Assembly (NCBI GenBank): GCA_013265495.1
Contig: MU060887.1
Span: 4,030,001 to 4,094,000 of the forward strand
Reading direction: 5' to 3'
DNA length: 64,000 bases
From: Vicugna vicugna
Lineage: Eukaryota
The position numbers and the translations under genes were made by a program. Position 1 is the first letter of the stretch; each line of letters begins with the position of its first letter. Below, piece by piece: positions 7,001-46,929 of this stretch. A model generated the notes under the pieces. That model saw nothing but the letters and a program-made list of their open reading frames with translations, had not been told where the DNA came from and did no database searches.

Positions 7001-10000
7001 CCTGTGCTGTGGCACCAGCTTTCCCCCTAAACAGGGCCGTCTCTTTCCTCACGTCCCAATCTCCTGAGCCAGCTGCTCTGACCTGGAATTTTCCCCTACC
7101 CTCCTAGCTGGCTGGATTCTTCAAGAGAGAAAAGTCCTTGCTCGCCACGGACAACTAATTACTCCTACCGCACAGGGTACTTTTTTTTTGTTGTTGTTGT
7201 TGACTTTCTCACCAGGTTGAACATACCTGCCTTTCGTGGGCATACTTCTGAAATACGTATCCTCGGGTGTTTGAGAAATAGATATTGGTCTGAGATATCT
7301 GATCTCCAAGCAAATAAGCAAAAACCGAGTTGCTTACATCCTGGAAGAACACACACATAGAATGGTCTCTTTAAAAGGAGACAGAGGGAGAAGGGGGGTG
7401 GCTGGGGAGATGTTCTTTAAGTAGATAAATAAGGCCTAGAAGTCAAATGCACAGCACAGTGATTGCAGACAGCAACACTGTATTATAAACTCCAAAGTTG
7501 CTAAGAAACCAAGTCTTAATTGTTCCCACAAAAAAAAGAAATGATAAGTGTGTGATATGGTATGGTGGTGATTGTATTGCTGTACATAAGTCTATCTAAT
7601 CAACACACTGTGGCGTGTCAATTATACCTCTGTTTTTAAAAGAGGGGGCAGATGCCAGTGATCACACTTCTGGGCATTTATCCCAGACAAGTGAAAACTT
7701 ATGTCCAGACAAAAGCCTGTCCATGAATGTCTACAGCAGCCTTATTTCTAACAGCCAAAAAGTAGAAACAACCCACTTCTGGTTCGGCCACACTTTGGAA
7801 AATTCCTCAGAAAGGAACAGACTAGACACATGCACAACAAATCAGACGAGTCTCCAAAGAATGTTGCTGGGACAAGCTAGTCCCCAGAGGTTTCGTATGG
7901 TATGGTCCCACTCATATAACATTCTTGAAATGATAAAATTAGAGAGATGGAAAACAGGTTCGTGGTTGCCAGGGTCAGGGCAGTGCCGGGCGACGTGGAA
8001 AGAGCGCCGGGGTGATGGAACAGTTGGGTATTTTGCCCTCAGTCGCCATTCCCTGACTTGACACAGTTGTGCCCATGTCAATTTCCTGTCTGTATCATAT
8101 TGCGCTTGTGTAAGATGTAACCACTGGGGGGAACTGGGTGAGGGATACGTGGTACTCTTATTTTTTCAACTTCCTGTACATCTATAATTATTTCAAAATA
8201 CCAGGTTAAAAAAAAAAAGAAGATATATGGATACACTCACAGTGTGTCGGCCAGCTGATCTAACAGTAGCTCCGGGGCCCCGCCCGTACCTCAGGTCCTG
8301 TCCTGAGCCCAGGGCAGTGCACCGCCCGAGTCCATCTCAGCCCCAGCCCTCGAGGCGTAACTGCCCTTATTTCCATTCATAATTACCTCTGCTCAGAGCA
8401 GAGTGGACAAACGAGACAGGACACGTGGTACTCACCGCACAAAAGGAATTTCCACTGTAACAACAGTTGTCACCAGAAATGTGGGAAACAGGGTGTTCTA
8501 TACCTGAAAGGAAAGAGAACTGAAATGCCCTCTGAGCTCCCTGCAGGTTCGGGGGGAGGTTAGAGCAGGGCTTCTCGCCGTCCGGCTGACATCTGCGCCC
8601 AGACTGTCCTGGGCACCGCGGGATGTTTTACAGCATCCCTGCTTCTGCTGACTGCCTTACCTTATTGAATCACTTATGCAATAACTTATTTAACTGGTGA
8701 CACTCTTCTCCAGTCTTGACAACTAAAAAATGTCTCCAGACATTGCTAAGTGTCATCTCGGGGTGAGGGGCAAATTATTCCTGATTGAGAACCACTGGTT
8801 TTGCAGAAACTCTTTCAGGATTCTGCCAACATTGCAGGAAGAGTGCCCTTCTCTTAGGGAGGCATTCTTTGATTCTGTTTTAAAAGAAGCTTCAACTCCA
8901 AAGAAAATATACATGTAGCTGACAAGCTCAATATCACTAATCATCAGGGAAATGCAGTGCAAAACCACAGTGAGGTACCTCCCGCCCATTAGGATGGCTA
9001 CCACGAAACAGAAAATGAGTGTTGGTGACGCCTGGAATCCTGCTGCACTGCTGGTGCGAATGTAAAATGGAATGAAAGTAGAATGACCACATGATCCAGG
9101 AATTCCACTTCTGGGTATATACCCCCACAAACATTAAAAGCATGGTCTCCAGGAGACATTTGTATATGGATGTTCAAACCAGCATGATCTATAATAGCTA
9201 AAACATGCAAGCAGCCCGAGTGTCCATTGACAACTGAATAGATTTTTTTATATGTGGTCCATTCACCCCAATGGAATATTATGCAGCCTTAAAAAGGGAG
9301 GAATTCTGACACCTGCTACAACACGGATGAACCTTGAGGACATGATGCTCAGTGAAACAAGCTGGCCATAAAAGGACAAATACTGAATGATCCCATTTAT
9401 TTGAGGTCCCCAGAGAAGTCACATTCATAGAGACAGAAAGTAAAATTGGGGGCACAGGGAATGGAGAAGGGGTATGGGGAGTTCACTCTTTGGATGCTAT
9501 TAAACTGATGGAGAGAAGAGAAAAGACAGAGACCAGACTGACTTACGTTACAGGGAGACCTGATGGTTCCTCAGTAAGTTAAATNNNNNNNNNNNNNNNN
9601 NNNNNNNNNNNNNNNNNNNNNNNNNNNNNNNNNNNNNNNNNNNNNNNNNNNNNNNNNNNNNNNNNNNNNNNNNNNNNNNNNNNNNNNNNNNNNNNNNNNN
9701 NNNNNNNNNNNNNNCATCACAACGAATACACACGAAACAAAACGACAGCAAATTGCCAGATGGTTATCTACCAACTCAGTGGTTTTTGACTGAGGGGATT
9801 TTGACCTGTGGGGGACACTGGGTGATGTCTGGGGACATCTGTGGTTGTCATGACTGGGGGTCTCCTGGCATTGAGTGGGTGGAGGCTGGGGAGGCTGCTC
9901 CACACCCCACGGTGCCCAGGATGGCCCTGCAGAGGATGACCTGGTCCTGATGTCAGCAGGACAGCAGTTAAGAAACCTCGTACTGACTCCTTTCTCACCT

Positions 10001-14600: not shown

Positions 14601-17600
14601 TCATTGGCCAGATAGGAAATATTTTAGGGGCCTCTGTCTTCACCCATTCATCTCTGTGAATGGTGCAATCACATAAAGGAATGGACGTGGTCATGTGATA
14701 ATAAAACTTTATTTAGAGACAAGGAAATGTGAATTTCATGTCATTTTTCAAGTGTTGCAAAATCCTAAGTCTTCTTTTGAATTGTTTTCAAGTGTATAAA
14801 GATATAAATACCATTCTTAGCCCACTGGGCTGTAGACAAACAGACCACAGAGCCTTCTGCAGTGAGGGAGAAGCCCTGTTTCCGAGCTGTCCAACACGGC
14901 AGCCGCTGGCCACACTGAGGGCTTGAAATGCGGTTGGTTTGACTGTGGATTTTTCTCTATATTTCATTTCACTTAAAAATATTTAATTTTTAAAATTATG
15001 GTAAAATCCACATAACTTAAAATATATCTTTCACCATTTATTTTAATTGTGCTAAAATATGCATTTAAACCATTTTGAAGTGCACAGTTCAGTGGCATTA
15101 AGCACTCACACTGTCGTGCAACCTTCCCACTGTCCATCTCCAGAACTTTCTCATCTTCCCAAACTAAGACTCTGTCCCCATGAAGCATTCACTCCCCCTT
15201 CCCCTCCCTCAGCCCCTGACACCTACCACNNNNNNNNNNNNNNNNNNNNNNNNNNNNNNNNNNNNNNNNNNNNNNNNNNNNNNNNNNNNNNNNNNNNNNN
15301 NNNNNNNNNNNNNNNNNNNNNNNNNNNNNNNNNNNNNNNNNNNNNNNNNNNNNNNNNNNNNNNNNNGTTTCCTGCATTTTTGGGGCTGAATGATATTCCA
15401 TTGTATGGATGGACCACATTTTATTTATCCATTCACTGGTCAAAGGAAATTTTAAATGTAAATAGCCACATGTGGCTAGGGGCTATTTGATAGGGCAGCC
15501 CAGTCTGAAGGAATGACACAGGAGTCAAGTCTTTTCATTTGAGATGCTTCTGCTGTGGAAGTCCTCACCCTGTTCTGGGCCAGCCTCCACCCTGGTCCCA
15601 GGAAGACCCGTCTCCTTCTCCGTGATCACCCGCTCTCCCCAGGCCCGTCCAGTCAGCCTCCAGACTCTGCCTCCCTAGCTGCTCAGTCTCTGTAGTGACC
15701 TCCCTCCTTTTTCTGTCTGGGCTTGTGGAGAGAGTAACATGAGCTTTGGCTCTCCATGTCCCCGCTTTCTCTTCCATCCTCCCATCGCCTCCAGGGGCTT
15801 CTTACCCACTCACGGGCCCTGGCTCCTCTGTGATGGCCTCCTCTTCAGCTCTGGCCTCTCTCTTTCTCTTCCCTCATCTGCTGCAGAAAATCGATATTCC
15901 CCAGGGTTGCTGGCCGCTAAACAGGTGATTCCTGGGAGGTCGCAAGCTCCCCACCCCATGAATGACCAGTTTCCATCTCCGGTCTTAGGTGTCATTGGTG
16001 TCCTGCAAGAATCAAGTCATCCCCAGCCGCCGACCCATCCCCATTCTCTCCACTGGAAACGTGGGAGCCGCTGTAAACTGCGTGCTCGCCTCCTTCCGCC
16101 AGCAAGTCCTGCTGAGTCTGCCTCCTTCTTCTCCACGTGGCCTTTTCTTCTGTTGAGGCTTTATCACGTTGTGTTGTTTCGGAGTTTTTTTGGCCTGGGT
16201 TTTTGGAAATCCTCCTAAACACAAACTGTGTAGCCCTAAATCCTCCAGTGCCGTTAGGATGAGGGATACCCACTTTGGTATGCTGCATGGATCTAGTTTT
16301 TTAGCTTTGCACCCTGACGATCCCAAGTGCATGAGGTTTCCACTCCTCTGAATGTTCTGCTTCATGGGCATTCATATTTGCTTCTCCCTTTCTCCACGGT
16401 GAACTCCTATTCATGCTTCAAAGCCCAGTTTGGGCATCAATTCCCCAAGAGAAACTTTCTAGGCATTTTCTCCTCAGACTCCCCCATAAGCATTTATAGT
16501 AAGTATCTATGACAGGTGGTACCACGCTATACTGTCATTATTTTAGTGACTTGTTGGTCTCTTCACCTCTCTTCCTCCAGCCTCTACCCCAACTGTGGAC
16601 TCCCTGTAGACCAGCACCTAGCAGCTCAGGACCAAGTTGTTTTTCATAATGTTGACTGAATGAAGGAATGAGGGCAAATATGATGTTTTAATAAAAAGGA
16701 AGGTAACAATACCTAAAATGGTCACTTACCCTAGATACAGGGCTATGTTTTTCTTGCAAGGATGTTTAATCAAGCGAGTTGTCGCAGATGAAAAATACAG
16801 GAGGTCCTAGAGAAAGAGAGTCATAAAACCTTCATCAAATCAGTAGTAATAATTACCTGGCAAAAACCATTTCCTAACGTGCAACACTGAAATTGTAAAT
16901 GTAAAAAAAAAAGAAAATGTAAAAGTGAAATCTAAATTAGGCAGGTGGGTTACATCTAATTTTCCTGTTTTGATGTCATCCCTTGGTCATGTCAGAGGTC
17001 ACCAATGGGGGAAGCTGGGTGAGGGGACCTGGGACATCTCTGCACTGTTTTGCAGCATGCTGTGAATCTATAATTACGTCAAAATTAAAAGTTTAAAGAG
17101 ATTCCCAGGATAATTATACACATCACATCTCATTCTTGTCTCTGTTATGTATTTCCAGGTTATTTGTTATTTGAAAGAGATGCCAGAGGACAAAAATCAT
17201 AAAGCTCGCGTTAGAGACCAGTCACTTGATTTAGAAATGCTGACATCACTTCTGAAATAACGCAACATCAATAGGAAACACATTTGAGATGAAAAAATAG
17301 TTTTTTCTTCTTGTATTTATAGGCACACGTGGGGCAAAAGGAAATTTTCTCCTACACTACGTCATGTAAACAAAGTAAGGGTTTGCTTTCTCTGTCCCTC
17401 TGCATTTAAAACCTTCTATCAGATAGAACGCTAGATAAAAACTCAGGTGAACTGAGTCCTAAACCCAGCGCCCTCTCCTGGCTTTGCTGAGGTTCTGTGA
17501 TCTCTCTCAACCAGTTTTTTAGTGACATGGGAAGATTATCGCCTACTTCAAAAGGCAATGGTAAGGATTAGATTAAGTCATGGTCTATGCCTGCCACAAC

Positions 17601-39805: not shown

Positions 39806-41121
<1,316 letters not shown>

Positions 41122-42725: not shown

Positions 42726-45192
42726 TCAGGCAGCAGCGGGGACCGTGATGTTGAGATCCTGGCGGATGAACCAGGCCCTCGGGTAGGGCAGCCAGCCGCG
42801 AAGCAGGCAGAGCAGGTGGAAGCGCCATGGGTAGAAGACGCCAGAGGCACGTGTGGCGCCGCCTCGGATCACAGCCAGAGCTGCCTTGGGCCCTGGGGCC
42901 GCCTTGGCCTTCGTGACGCCCCTGGGGATGGGAGTGCGCGGTGGGGGCTGGGGCTGAGCGGCTCCCAACCCCAACCCCCGCCTGGTCCACGCTCGCGCCC
43001 TGGGCCTCACCTGACTCCCTCCGCGACTGAGGCGCGATCTCGGAGGCCCAGGACGCACATGGTGATAGCCACATTCACGTCCTGCACGTCCAGCTCCCGC
43101 CGGAGAGAGCCAAAGAAGCTGTCCAGAGCGATCTTGGCCGCCGAGTAGGGGCTGGAGAAGGAGGTGGGCACGCGGCCTGGGGGCGCCGGAGGGCAGCGGC
43201 TGAGCAGTCACACACTGCTCCCCCTCCTCCAGGAAATCTTCCTGGCACCTCCAGGCTCTCCCACATAGAGCCCTGTGGCTTCCCCGCTCCCCGCCCCGCG
43301 TGCACGCACCTAGCAACGAGGACACCACCACCAGGGAGCCCTTGCTGTCGGTCAGACTGGGCAGCGCCAACGAAGTTAGTTGCACGTAACTCAGGAAGTT
43401 CACCTGAAGGCGTCGACTGCGTCACCGGGCGGAGGAGGAACCCAACCCCAACAGGGCAGGGGCGGAGCCTAGAGCACGGGGGTGGGGCTTGGTAGGTAGG
43501 GGCGGGGTTCGAGAAATGGGACGAAGTTCCGAATGGAAGAGGGAGAGCAGGCCAGGGGGCGGAGTCAAGATCGAGAGGGCGGAGCCTAGAACCAGGAAAG
43601 GCGGGGTTTGGAGCTGGGAGTGGCAGGGCCCCAGGAGATGGGGAGAGTCTGGGGCGGGAGGTCGGAGCCAGAACCAAGAGGAGGCGGAGCTGGGGCCGCG
43701 GAGGGTCGGAGCACCTGCATGAGCCAGCGTGTCGCCTGGGCGCTGCGGGCCCGCGTGCCTGCCGGGGCGGCGCCGAGGTGGTTCAGCACCAGGTAGTCCA
43801 GCCCTCCTAGCCCAGAGAGGCCCGTCAGCCCGGAGTCAGTCCTTGAGGCTCCGCCCCCGTGCCTGATAAGACACCGCCCCTAATCCTGCCCCCTGAGCTA
43901 GCAAAGCTCTGACAGAGCACTGACCCAATGAGCTCCGCCCCAGATAGCGCCCCCAACTAAGATCAAAGAAACCCCACTCTACTCCCCTCTTCCCAGATCC
44001 AATGAGGCTCGGTCCACAGTTGCTGGATGCAATGAGGCTCCACCCCTGGCCACGCCCCTTGTCCATAAGTCTCCGCCCTCAGACTCCCGTAACTACCACC
44101 CTCCCACCCTAATTTGGATCCTGCCCCTAAGGCCAAGGCCAAGGTCCCGACTCCAGGCCCCGCCCCTCACCCAGCTTGTCCAGCGCAAACCGCACCACGC
44201 GCTCGGGCACCTCGGGGAAGGCCACGTCCGCAGCGACGTAGAAGACCTTGGCAGCGCCCAGCTCCCGGCAGCTCCCCACCACCTGAGGGGGCCAGAGCTG
44301 CCCGTGGGCCCCTCCGCCGGCCTGCCCCGTTAGGGTCCCAGCCTGAAGCCCCCTCCCCTAGTACGAGCCTCAGATTCCATTCAACATCATTCTCAAAGCT
44401 AACCCCTGGGGTAGCAAACTGGCAGACCGCAGGCCAGGACAGAGGACATTTTATTTGCTCGACCATCAACATTTAAAACTCAGGAGATTTCAAATGCATC
44501 CTGAGATTTCTGACCTCTCTTAAAATTCTGGAAGGTTTATTCCCCAAAACTACATTTCCTTGAAGCAGCACTAGGCTGTTGCTAAGAAGTGTCTACCCAC
44601 CCTGCTTTTGAACTGGAGAACCCTAGCTATCCCTACAGCCTTTGGCCACTCACTATCAGTACTTCCACTCATTGAGGAACACTCCTGGCTTTCCAGCTGT
44701 CTCACTGCATCAACCCAACACCACAAAGTAGGAGAAGGTACTTTTATGGTCTCTGTTTTGTGAGTGAGGAAACTAAGACTCAGAGAGATTAAGTGACTTG
44801 CCCAGGGCCACACAGAAAGCCTGGAGGCTTGCAGGGATTCAAACCCAGACCCTGTCTTTCCCCCATCCCTGCCGCCACCATTAAACTGGAAATGGGGTGT
44901 CTCACCTTCTGCAGGAGAGCCTCGGTGGGGGCAGTGAGCACCAGGTGGGAGCCCAGGAGTGCGTAGTGATAGGCCAGCTCCTCCCCCACACCTGCACTGG
45001 CTCCGGTCAGCAGCACTCGGGCTCCCTGGAGGCTGGCTGGCAGTGAGCAGGGGTGGTCAGCTTGGGGGTTGGACAGGACAGCCGGATCATTCCTCCCTCC
45101 TCCACTCCCAGGCACTCACCTGGGTTAAAGTTGTCATCCTAATAATAGGCAAAGAACAGGGCTCCTAGCCCAGTGAGGAGTAGCATCTTCAT
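42726..45192 (-). pseudogene. HSD11B1L: Hydroxysteroid 11-beta dehydrogenase 1-like (SDR family), 7 coding exons, with a premature stop at codon 18 in this sequence (otherwise an open 287-codon frame)
   Basis: Exons 45192-45120 (MKMLLLTGLGALFFAYY*DDNFNP), 45036-44906 (SLQGARVLLTGASAGVGEELAY..., Rossmann TGxxxGxG), 44282-44171, 43806-43715 (GLDYLVLNH...), 43403-43310 (VNFLSYVQLT...VVVSSLL), 43176-43011 (RVPTSFSSPYSAAK, catalytic YxxxK), 42921-42726. All GT-AG and in phase, 864 nt. The only disruption is TAG at 45141-45139. Gene identity is certain; the confidence reflects pseudogene status. Confidence 0.7.
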
Positions 45193-46929
45193 GGCCCTCC
45201 CTGGGTCTGCAGCAGGAGAGAGGTGGCTGGCACAGGCCTGGCCCACAGTCATACCCATTTCCCCAACTGTGTCTTTGTTCGAAGAGCACGCAGTGATGCC
45301 CCCAGCCTTGGCCCTGCCCCCTCTTGCCTATCTCCATGGCCACCACTGGGTCCAGGTTATCATACAGATCACTGGAACCACTGCACCAATCTCCTCCCCC
45401 TGCTGAAACCTCTGCCTGTATCACTTAGAATCAAAGCCTCGGTGACCAAAAAGGCCTTGCCTGGACCAGCCCCTCTTGTTCACTCTGCTTTGCCACTCCA
45501 TCTTTTTCACTGTTCATCAGAATGAGCCAGTCATCATCCTGGCTCAGAACTTTTGCACTGGCTGTTCCCTCTGCTAGGAATACTTTTCTGGAATACAACC
45601 CAATGGCTTGATCTTTCAAGTCTCACCTCCAAAATCACCTCCTCGGAGGGTGCTTCCCTGGCTTCCTTCTCTAAAGCACCTCTATTCCTGGTCCCTCTCT
45701 CTCCCTTATCTGTAGAACTTTCTTTTCCTTCTCAGCACTTGGTCATCCCCTTAAATTATCTCAATGATTTGTTACATGTTCAGGATCCCTCTTTGCCCTT
45801 GGACTCAGTCCCATGGGGCCAGGAAAGAAATGGAAACCTGCTTCTATTTTGCTCACTTTTGGATCTTCAATGCCCCAAACTGCCAGACATGCAGTACATC
45901 CTCAATAGATATTAGACTAACCCACAGTGATATGAGGAACGTGGGAAGTGAGAAGTGGGAGAGCCCAGAAAGACAACTGTCTGGGGACACCCCATGGAAT
46001 TGAACATTCAGGACTGGTTTTGAGACAGAGGTGTCTGTGTCATCAGGTTAAGATGTGACTTCAGCTGTGGGAATCAAGGTACCTGTTCTAGGCAGAAGGT
46101 GAGAGAGAAATAGGCAAAGTGCTTAACATTCTGGGAGTTGTGGGTCTCCCATGAAAGGGGCATAGGCCCATCACATCTTGGGATTTTTAATCCTCTGAAC
46201 TTCATGGGGCAAAGAAGAAAGGTTGACTTCCAGAACATAGGAAGCTGAGAGGTGTTGGGGTTGGTAAGTCCTCAAATCTCCAAGCTCTAAATCCAGTCTG
46301 ACCTCCTTTGCCCCCACTGCGAAGTTCCAGCTGCCTCCTCCCTGGCTCTCCCATCTTCACACTCCCTCCCTCCCACTCTATCCTTTCCAAACAGCCATAG
46401 GGAGTCTTCAAAAAAAAAAAAAAAAATCTGGCATGTCTCTTCCTGCTCCAAATCCTCCCAGGACTTGCCACTGGCCCAGATGGAGGCAAACTCCTCACCT
46501 CAGCCCACAAGACCCAGTAGGTCTGACCCCTGCCCTCCTGTCCAACCTCATCCAGCCCCGCTCCTGTCTATGAATCTTCCAGTTCTCAGAAAAGTGAACT
46601 CCTCGCCCTGACCCAGTCATGCCAGCATGCCCTCATCAGGGAAAGCTCTCTCACTTCTTCCCACTTCCAGGGAAAAGCTGTGAAGCCCCTCAGCTCAACT
46701 CTCTCCTCAACCCGGCCCGGACCACAGCGGCCCTGCAGGGGTTGGCTGGTAGGCAGGGTGGGTGCATGAATGGATGAATGGGATGGAGGAAGCAGCCAGG
46801 CCGTGATGAGGGATGAAAGGGGAAAACTCGATCCCCGCAGAACCCACCGGCCCCCTGACCTTGCTGGGCCTCAGTTTCCCCTCTGGACAAAGGAGGCGTG
46901 AGACCCACTGCACGCTCCCATCCGCGCAC

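Follow-up and report, generated by a model that had tools for sequence, protein, structure and literature searches.

An early stop codon in HSD11B1L of a New World camelid points to probable gene loss under relaxed constraint

Has the gene HSD11B1L been lost in the New World camelids and, if so, is the loss a recent one? This question is raised by a 64,000-nucleotide (nt) stretch of Vicugna vicugna DNA (contig MU060887.1, positions 4,030,001 to 4,094,000; hereafter the window, meaning the whole stretch), in which the first coding exon of HSD11B1L carries an in-frame TAG at codon 18. HSD11B1L is an orphan enzyme without an agreed physiological substrate; primates and sheep express it in the brain and along the pituitary-gonadal axis (PMC5592779). 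The initial annotation of this locus, made from the sequence alone, interpreted the stop as a possible very young loss in camelids of an otherwise intact gene, caught before the gene decayed. By comparing the locus with its orthologues, we gathered evidence suggesting that HSD11B1L is most likely a unitary pseudogene, or becoming one, in the alpaca/llama lineage, and that the relaxation of constraint probably began millions of years ago, not very recently.

The gene is the HSD11B1L orthologue (11beta-HSD3/SCDR10) of a New World camelid, present as a single copy at the locus between MICOS13 and RPL36, which bears out the identity given by the initial annotation. Searches with the exon 2 open reading frame (ORF) and with exon 6 retrieved the HSD11B1L proteins of many mammals, with HSD11B1L as the top matches. 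Single exons gave weak matches to the adh_short profile, the dromedary orthologue scored 114.7 bits with the domain covering residues 32–207, and among proteins of solved structure 11beta-HSD1 is the nearest relative (E = 1.7e-65). Over 7.7 kb, the window aligns colinearly and with 96.3% identity to the dromedary locus (L007, GCA_000803125.3), which encodes HSD11B1L and has the QIL1/MICOS13 gene upstream; the human gene order is SAFB - HSD11B1L - RPL36 (PMC5592779). The coding sequences (CDS) of the window and dromedary differ at 16 of 864 nt (98.1% identical) and align without gaps. A Vicugna pacos product annotated at NCBI as "isoform X2" (P0295; XP_015096618.1 / XP_031545532.1; 153 residues) starts exactly at Met135 and is identical to window exons 5–7, including I183 and V218 (the F183I and A218V replacements discussed below), both of which differ from Camelus. 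Because of the 96.3% identity to dromedary and the identity to P0295, the window can be assigned to a New World camelid (Lamini) of the alpaca type. Two annotation releases place the start of the alpaca RefSeq product at Met135, as would be expected if the alpaca reference also lacked an open N-terminus.

We rebuilt the HSD11B1L model from the window sequence and its ungapped alignment to the dromedary CDS. The model has seven coding exons on the minus strand (Table 1) with a total of 864 nt, corresponding to 287 codons and a terminal TGA. All internal exon boundaries are of the AG...GT type and all 12 internal splice sites are intact, in agreement with the earlier description of six downstream exons in frame with canonical splice sites. 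The TGxxxGxG motif (TGASAGVG, residues 35–42) and the YxxxK motif (YSAAK, residues 178–182) are both preserved, as had also been described. Exon 1 reads ATG AAG ATG ... TAT TAT TAG GAT GAC AAC TTT AAC CCA G/gtgagt on the minus strand, with its GT donor at 45119–45118 and a conserved acceptor, cag/ACCCAGGGAGGGCCATG, located 14 nt 5' of the ATG. Minus-strand positions 45192–45120 translate as MKMLLLTGLGALFFAYY, a stop codon and DDNFNP, the TAG occupying 45141–45139. The frame from the conserved HSD11B1L start is interrupted there, and the earlier reading of this exon and of the stop position was right in every detail that we checked. In the alignment with 11beta-HSD1, codon 18 falls where the N-terminal membrane anchor ends, ahead of the adh_short domain.

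The germline change from TGG to TAG would terminate translation after a 17-residue membrane-anchor fragment, ahead of the cofactor-binding fold that begins at about residue 30. Downstream of the stop, the first ATG in frame is codon 135 (mRNA nt 403), and the longest in-frame ORF that remains is 153 residues long. Reinitiation at Met135 would produce a 153-residue piece lacking both the half with the TGxxxGxG motif and the targeting to the endoplasmic reticulum (ER), and this product covers only positions 105–178 of the adh_short profile. The view that reinitiation at Met135 could not restore the Rossmann fold is upheld by the model. Because the stop is early and the Met135 piece is without the cofactor half, no enzyme is to be expected from this allele.

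The stop is a derived state. Trp is found at the position of codon 18 in 156 of the 158 fetched orthologue sequences with at least 70% identity, and the orthologues read YYW(D/A/N/G)DNF around it. The proteins of Camelus dromedarius, C. bactrianus and C. ferus all read AYYWDDNFNP, keeping Trp18 in a full-length ORF, and codon 18 is TGG in the genomes of dromedary, warthog (L008) and muntjac (L009). A single G>A transition, not at a CpG, is sufficient to turn this TGG into TAG; the same change had been postulated from the YYWDDNF of the orthologue, and the orthologue proteins and the three TGG genomes now substantiate it. Because the three Camelus species and 156/158 orthologue sequences keep Trp18, the change is derived on the Lamini side only. 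The loss proposed for camelids is indeed lineage-specific, but it is restricted to the New World (alpaca/llama) side, with the gene intact in Camelus.

The stop is accompanied by an excess of amino-acid replacements on the same lineage. We polarised the 16 CDS differences between the window and dromedary with warthog and muntjac as outgroups. The window branch has nine non-synonymous changes (W18stop, R51L, N72S, K75E, P79A, I84V, M88V, F183I and A218V) and two synonymous ones, whereas the dromedary branch has no non-synonymous and three synonymous changes (9:2 versus 0:3, Fisher p = 0.027); two further synonymous changes were ambiguous. At every replaced position other than A218, at least 95% of the fetched orthologue sequences share the original residue, Arg51 being kept in 165/168 and Phe183 in 201/207 of them. 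In our own four-taxon codon model (GY94 type, F3x4), from which codon 18 was excluded, omega was estimated as 0.65 on the window branch versus 0.10 for the background (2dlnL 7.79; likelihood-ratio test, p = 0.005). An omega of 1 on the window branch was not rejected (p = 0.56), with a profile 95% interval of about 0.19–5.

The amount of change is also what might be expected of a sequence released from constraint. With an intron divergence of 2.9% (pairwise) between the window and dromedary, 12.7 changes would be expected on the window branch for neutral DNA evolving at the intron rate, compared with 11–13 observed in the CDS. The neutral expectation is 0.34 nonsense changes (one observed) and 1.5 indels (none observed, P(0) = 0.22), both of which are compatible with neutrality. 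These estimates could be explained by a coding sequence that has evolved close to neutrally along the Lamini branch, with strong purifying selection retained in Camelus. Old and New World camelids are reported to have separated about 16.3 million years ago (PMC12127551), and omega taken at face value would imply that roughly 60% of the branch of about 16 million years was unconstrained. The data are suggestive of a long-standing relaxation of constraint on the Lamini-side branch, although they do not prove it. The wording "otherwise intact" and "caught before the gene decayed" was too strong for a gene with eight missense changes, compared with none in dromedary, and an omega of 0.65 versus 0.10. 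The description of the loss as "very young" fares little better, as relaxed constraint over a substantial part of the branch is indicated, even if the dating is softened by the substitution tract around exon 3.

This tract became apparent in a 5.4-kb alignment of the four species. Within 0.9 kb including exon 3 (Table 1), 17 weak-to-strong (W>S) changes versus a single strong-to-weak (S>W) change are derived in the window, compared with 8:28 in the rest of the alignment (Fisher p = 3e-7). The tract contains 20 window-derived versus 7 dromedary-derived changes, and six of the former are found within 53 nt of exon 3, each to G. From its substitution pattern, the tract looks like the trace of GC-biased gene conversion at a former hotspot, and such local conversion around exon 3 may have fixed several damaging replacements. 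Conversion by a paralogue or a retrocopy was considered as a source of the exon 3 cluster and rejected, since the tract runs into both introns. Exon 3 of dromedary and muntjac is 98.2% identical including silent sites, compared with 86–93% for the other exons, hinting at an extra constraint on this exon that was lost on the window lineage. The window also has a 20-bp deletion relative to dromedary and muntjac at about 44319 (minus strand, approximately 37 nt 5' of the exon 3 acceptor), in the region expected to hold a branch point.

A tract of biased gene conversion can give a false or inflated signal of relaxed selection, and since five of the eight missense changes lie inside the W>S tract, the dating of the loss is soft. 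It might even be imagined that alpaca, vicuna, llama and guanaco inherited an already disabled HSD11B1L from their common ancestor. The damage would then have begun with a GC-biased gene conversion hotspot that fixed four or five deleterious replacements in exon 3, in the cofactor-binding half, and the stop would have drifted in later. We regard this more specific scenario as speculative and rather unlikely.

What, then, is the best explanation of the locus? We consider it fairly likely that the TAG is a real lesion in an HSD11B1L gene already under relaxed constraint. Several observations weigh against this explanation and have to be set beside it. The location of five of the eight window-branch missense changes inside the W>S tract is one of them, as biased gene conversion is able to carry slightly deleterious replacements to fixation in a gene that still functions. 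When the exon 3 codons were removed, leaving three missense changes and one synonymous change, omega was 0.75 and the test was no longer significant (p = 0.079). The gene has only one stop, and neither a frameshift nor a splice-site lesion was seen in it, which taken alone would fit a recent event. The evidence comes from one Lamini genome, in which a consensus error or a heterozygous site of a single animal is possible, and the stop itself is a single base in a single assembly. The alpaca product P0295 is not clearly independent evidence, since it may share its source animal or assembly with the window; both alpaca reference versions were derived from one animal (PMC6598621).

Part of this evidence could be accommodated by a young null allele, segregating or recently fixed, with the missense excess produced by biased gene conversion and chance. 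One stop without indels, 12 intact internal splice sites, both motifs preserved, and a W>S tract that accounts for the exon 3 cluster are what such an allele would show, and the loss of significance without exon 3 is in line with it. On the other hand, R51L and F183I lie outside the tract at the two highly conserved positions described above, at least three missense changes outside exon 3 would arise with a probability of about 0.05 at an omega of 0.10, and the dromedary branch is without any missense change. The NCBI alpaca model, too, begins at Met135. We therefore see the young allele as a minor, although real, possibility. It is improbable, in our judgement, that the TAG is a consensus or assembly error in an animal that is truly TGG with a functional gene. 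The alpaca assemblies that have been published are fragmented meta-assemblies going back to 454/Sanger data (PMC6598621), which makes an error at one base conceivable, but about 190x of Illumina coverage was added for VicPac3.1 (PMC6598621), and substitution errors are much rarer than homopolymer indels. The local divergence from dromedary is ordinary (2.7–2.9%) with indels even at 8 and 8, the neighbouring RPL36 exons are intact, and the missense excess on the same lineage is independent of the stop. The Met135 start in both alpaca annotation releases also argues against such an error. The stop, its derived state, the missense excess and the W>S tract are seen directly in the sequences, whereas a genuine and fixed TAG and the timing proposed above are inferences. 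Homology searches with the exon 2 ORF and P0295 turned up no independent Lamini DNA, and exact look-ups with P0295, with P0202 and with five ORFs of the window in the region of exons 1–7 were equally empty. The exon 2 ORF search returned only other mammals, none with the camelid NFNP signature, and a 43-nt exon 1 pattern allowing either allele had no match in metagenome contigs. Contigs fetched for P0002 as a possible Lamini comparison were only about 82% identical to the window, belonged to a distant mammal and were left unused.

Could the stop be bypassed, with the enzyme still being made? Adenosine-to-inosine editing (UAG to UIG, read as Trp), readthrough, a near-cognate start at GTG32 or CTG33, or an alternative isoform might each achieve this in principle, and UAG is indeed the preferred ADAR triplet. 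In addition, N-terminally truncated 11beta-HSD1 folds in crystal structures, with PDB chains beginning near alignment residue 20–24. However, the predicted fold of the 281 nt surrounding the site is no more stable than that of shuffled sequences (z = +0.78), with the A in a 4-bp stem only, and UAG-G is not known as a readthrough context. A protein starting from residue 32 would be without the ER anchor, and with the canonical acceptor an out-of-frame ATG at mRNA nt 56 closes after 15 codons. M88V removes an in-frame ATG that seems, from the length of the 200-residue isoforms in other species, to serve as their start codon (P0046 starts with MASPE). The exon-3-skipping isoforms of 230 residues, such as goat P0039, have an out-of-frame N-terminus without TGxxxGxG, all isoforms encoding the Rossmann fold include the codon-18 exon, and all published human start sites read into that exon (PMC5592779). 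The inactivating lesion is located in a constitutive coding exon, and no rescue route was found among the ATGs, the isoforms and the editing fold. Any such bypass seems to us very remote.

Two candidate rescue isoforms were followed further and discarded. The start of exon 2 has a tandem acceptor, cag/ccag/ (window 45033–45040), and the combination of the acceptor shifted by 4 nt with exon 3 skipping leads to the out-of-frame 230-residue isoforms of goat and other species. The frame of this goat-type isoform is open in the window, but its N-terminus is without the glycine motif. The Camelus "isoform X3" has an N-terminal extension of 57 residues, which lies upstream of the conserved acceptor, has no bearing on the enzyme and is closed in the window by a TAG at 45327–45329. 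This TAG is a second TGG>TAG change relative to dromedary, in the leader or an intron 5' of the coding exon, and is probably neutral.

Table 1. Coordinates of HSD11B1L and associated features in the window (position 1 is the first letter of the stretch)
Feature	Position	Strand	Remarks
HSD11B1L exon 1	45120..45192	-	Codons 1-24 + 1 nt; encodes the N-terminal membrane anchor; ungapped against dromedary, warthog and muntjac exon 1
In-frame TAG, codon 18	45139..45141	-	TGG>TAG; minus-strand G>A at 45140
HSD11B1L exon 2	44906..45036	-	TGASAGVG at 45007-44984; window-specific R51L (CGC>CTC, 44959-44957); camelid-shared Pro61 (44929-44927)
HSD11B1L exon 3	44171..44282	-	Window-specific N72S, K75E, P79A, I84V, M88V and 1 synonymous change; all to G
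HSD11B1L exon 4	43715..43806	-	Met135 (43720-43718), first in-frame ATG past the stop
HSD11B1L exon 5	43310..43403	-	Protein same as Camelus
HSD11B1L exon 6	43011..43176	-	Y178xxxK182 (43147-43133); window-specific F183I (43132-43130) and A218V (43027-43025)
HSD11B1L exon 7	42726..42921	-	TGA at 42728-42726; protein same as Camelus
Weak-to-strong substitution tract	43800..44699	-	0.9 kb; runs from the 3' part of intron 2 through exon 3 into the 5' part of intron 3; window lineage
RPL36 coding exons	39806..41115	-	From ORF translations; downstream of HSD11B1L, appear intact, mark conserved synteny

The closest intact counterpart is the HSD11B1L of Old World camels (dromedary KAB1259511.1, P0292; C. 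ferus and C. bactrianus XP_010965053.1, P0202), which is located at the same locus, has the same seven coding exons and shares the camelid-specific residues N23, P61, F90, K226, Y273 and D281 with the window. Camelus, unlike the window, has TGG as codon 18, and none of the eight residues replaced in the window has changed there. Pro61 is a peculiarity of camelids on both sides (TAPTE; window 44927–44929, shared with L007), other mammals having His (TAHTE). Residue 61 aligns with the Arg of TARS in 11beta-HSD1, which contacts the 2'-phosphate of NADP; Camelus HSD11B1L is under strong constraint despite Pro61. The paralogue 11beta-HSD1 (HSD11B1; PDB 4bb5, 1xu7) is likewise a classical short-chain dehydrogenase/reductase (SDR) with an N-terminal membrane anchor, TGxxxGxG and YxxxK, but it is encoded at another locus and has a known role as a glucocorticoid reductase, whereas HSD11B1L is without a known physiological substrate (PMC5592779). 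Outside the gene, the window includes two N runs, at 9585–9714 (130 nt) and 15230–15366 (137 nt).

Mouse and rat likewise lack HSD11B1L (PMC5592779); there, too, the orphan SDR has been lost from the conserved SAFB-RPL36 neighbourhood in a lineage-specific manner. The two cases differ in that no gene is annotated in murids, whereas the whole gene body is recognisable in the window, with one stop. The initial annotation had listed the gene as absent in mouse, rat and rabbit; this is correct for the murids, but rabbit has an annotated full-length HSD11B1L. Full-length HSD11B1L is annotated in rabbit, pika, beaver, squirrels and kangaroo rats (e.g. P0250, P0253, P0203, P0208 and P0256), and because these include several non-murid rodents, the statement that the gene is "absent in rabbit and all rodents" (PMC5592779) is out of date.

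Unitary pseudogenes of camelids have been identified by comparative screens, among them TAS2R16, CES3 and CPA3 in Old World camels (PMC12127551). These losses are events of the same kind, being nonsense or frameshift changes specific to one camelid tribe; they are, however, specific to the Old World side and confirmed in several species, whereas the HSD11B1L stop is on the New World side and comes from one genome. HSD11B1L is not mentioned in the main text of that study (PMC12127551), a screen for Old World-specific losses. Stops in the first 10% of a CDS, such as the one in HSD11B1L, fall outside the "middle 80%" rule of loss screens, and the "uncertain loss" rule of TOGA (middle 80% of the CDS; PMC12127551) would not count it. 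A camelid loss of HSD11B1L was not found reported in the literature searched, which took in the main texts of two gene-loss papers. The present case is apparently an ordinary, lineage-specific gene loss that has gone unreported.

Confirmation of the loss in alpaca and llama would make these animals a large, accessible, domestic natural knockout, with Camelus as a closely related intact control. There is no mouse model for HSD11B1L because murids lack the gene (PMC5592779). If the interpretation is true, South American camelids could help to find the function of HSD11B1L, and the enzyme would be shown once more to be dispensable.

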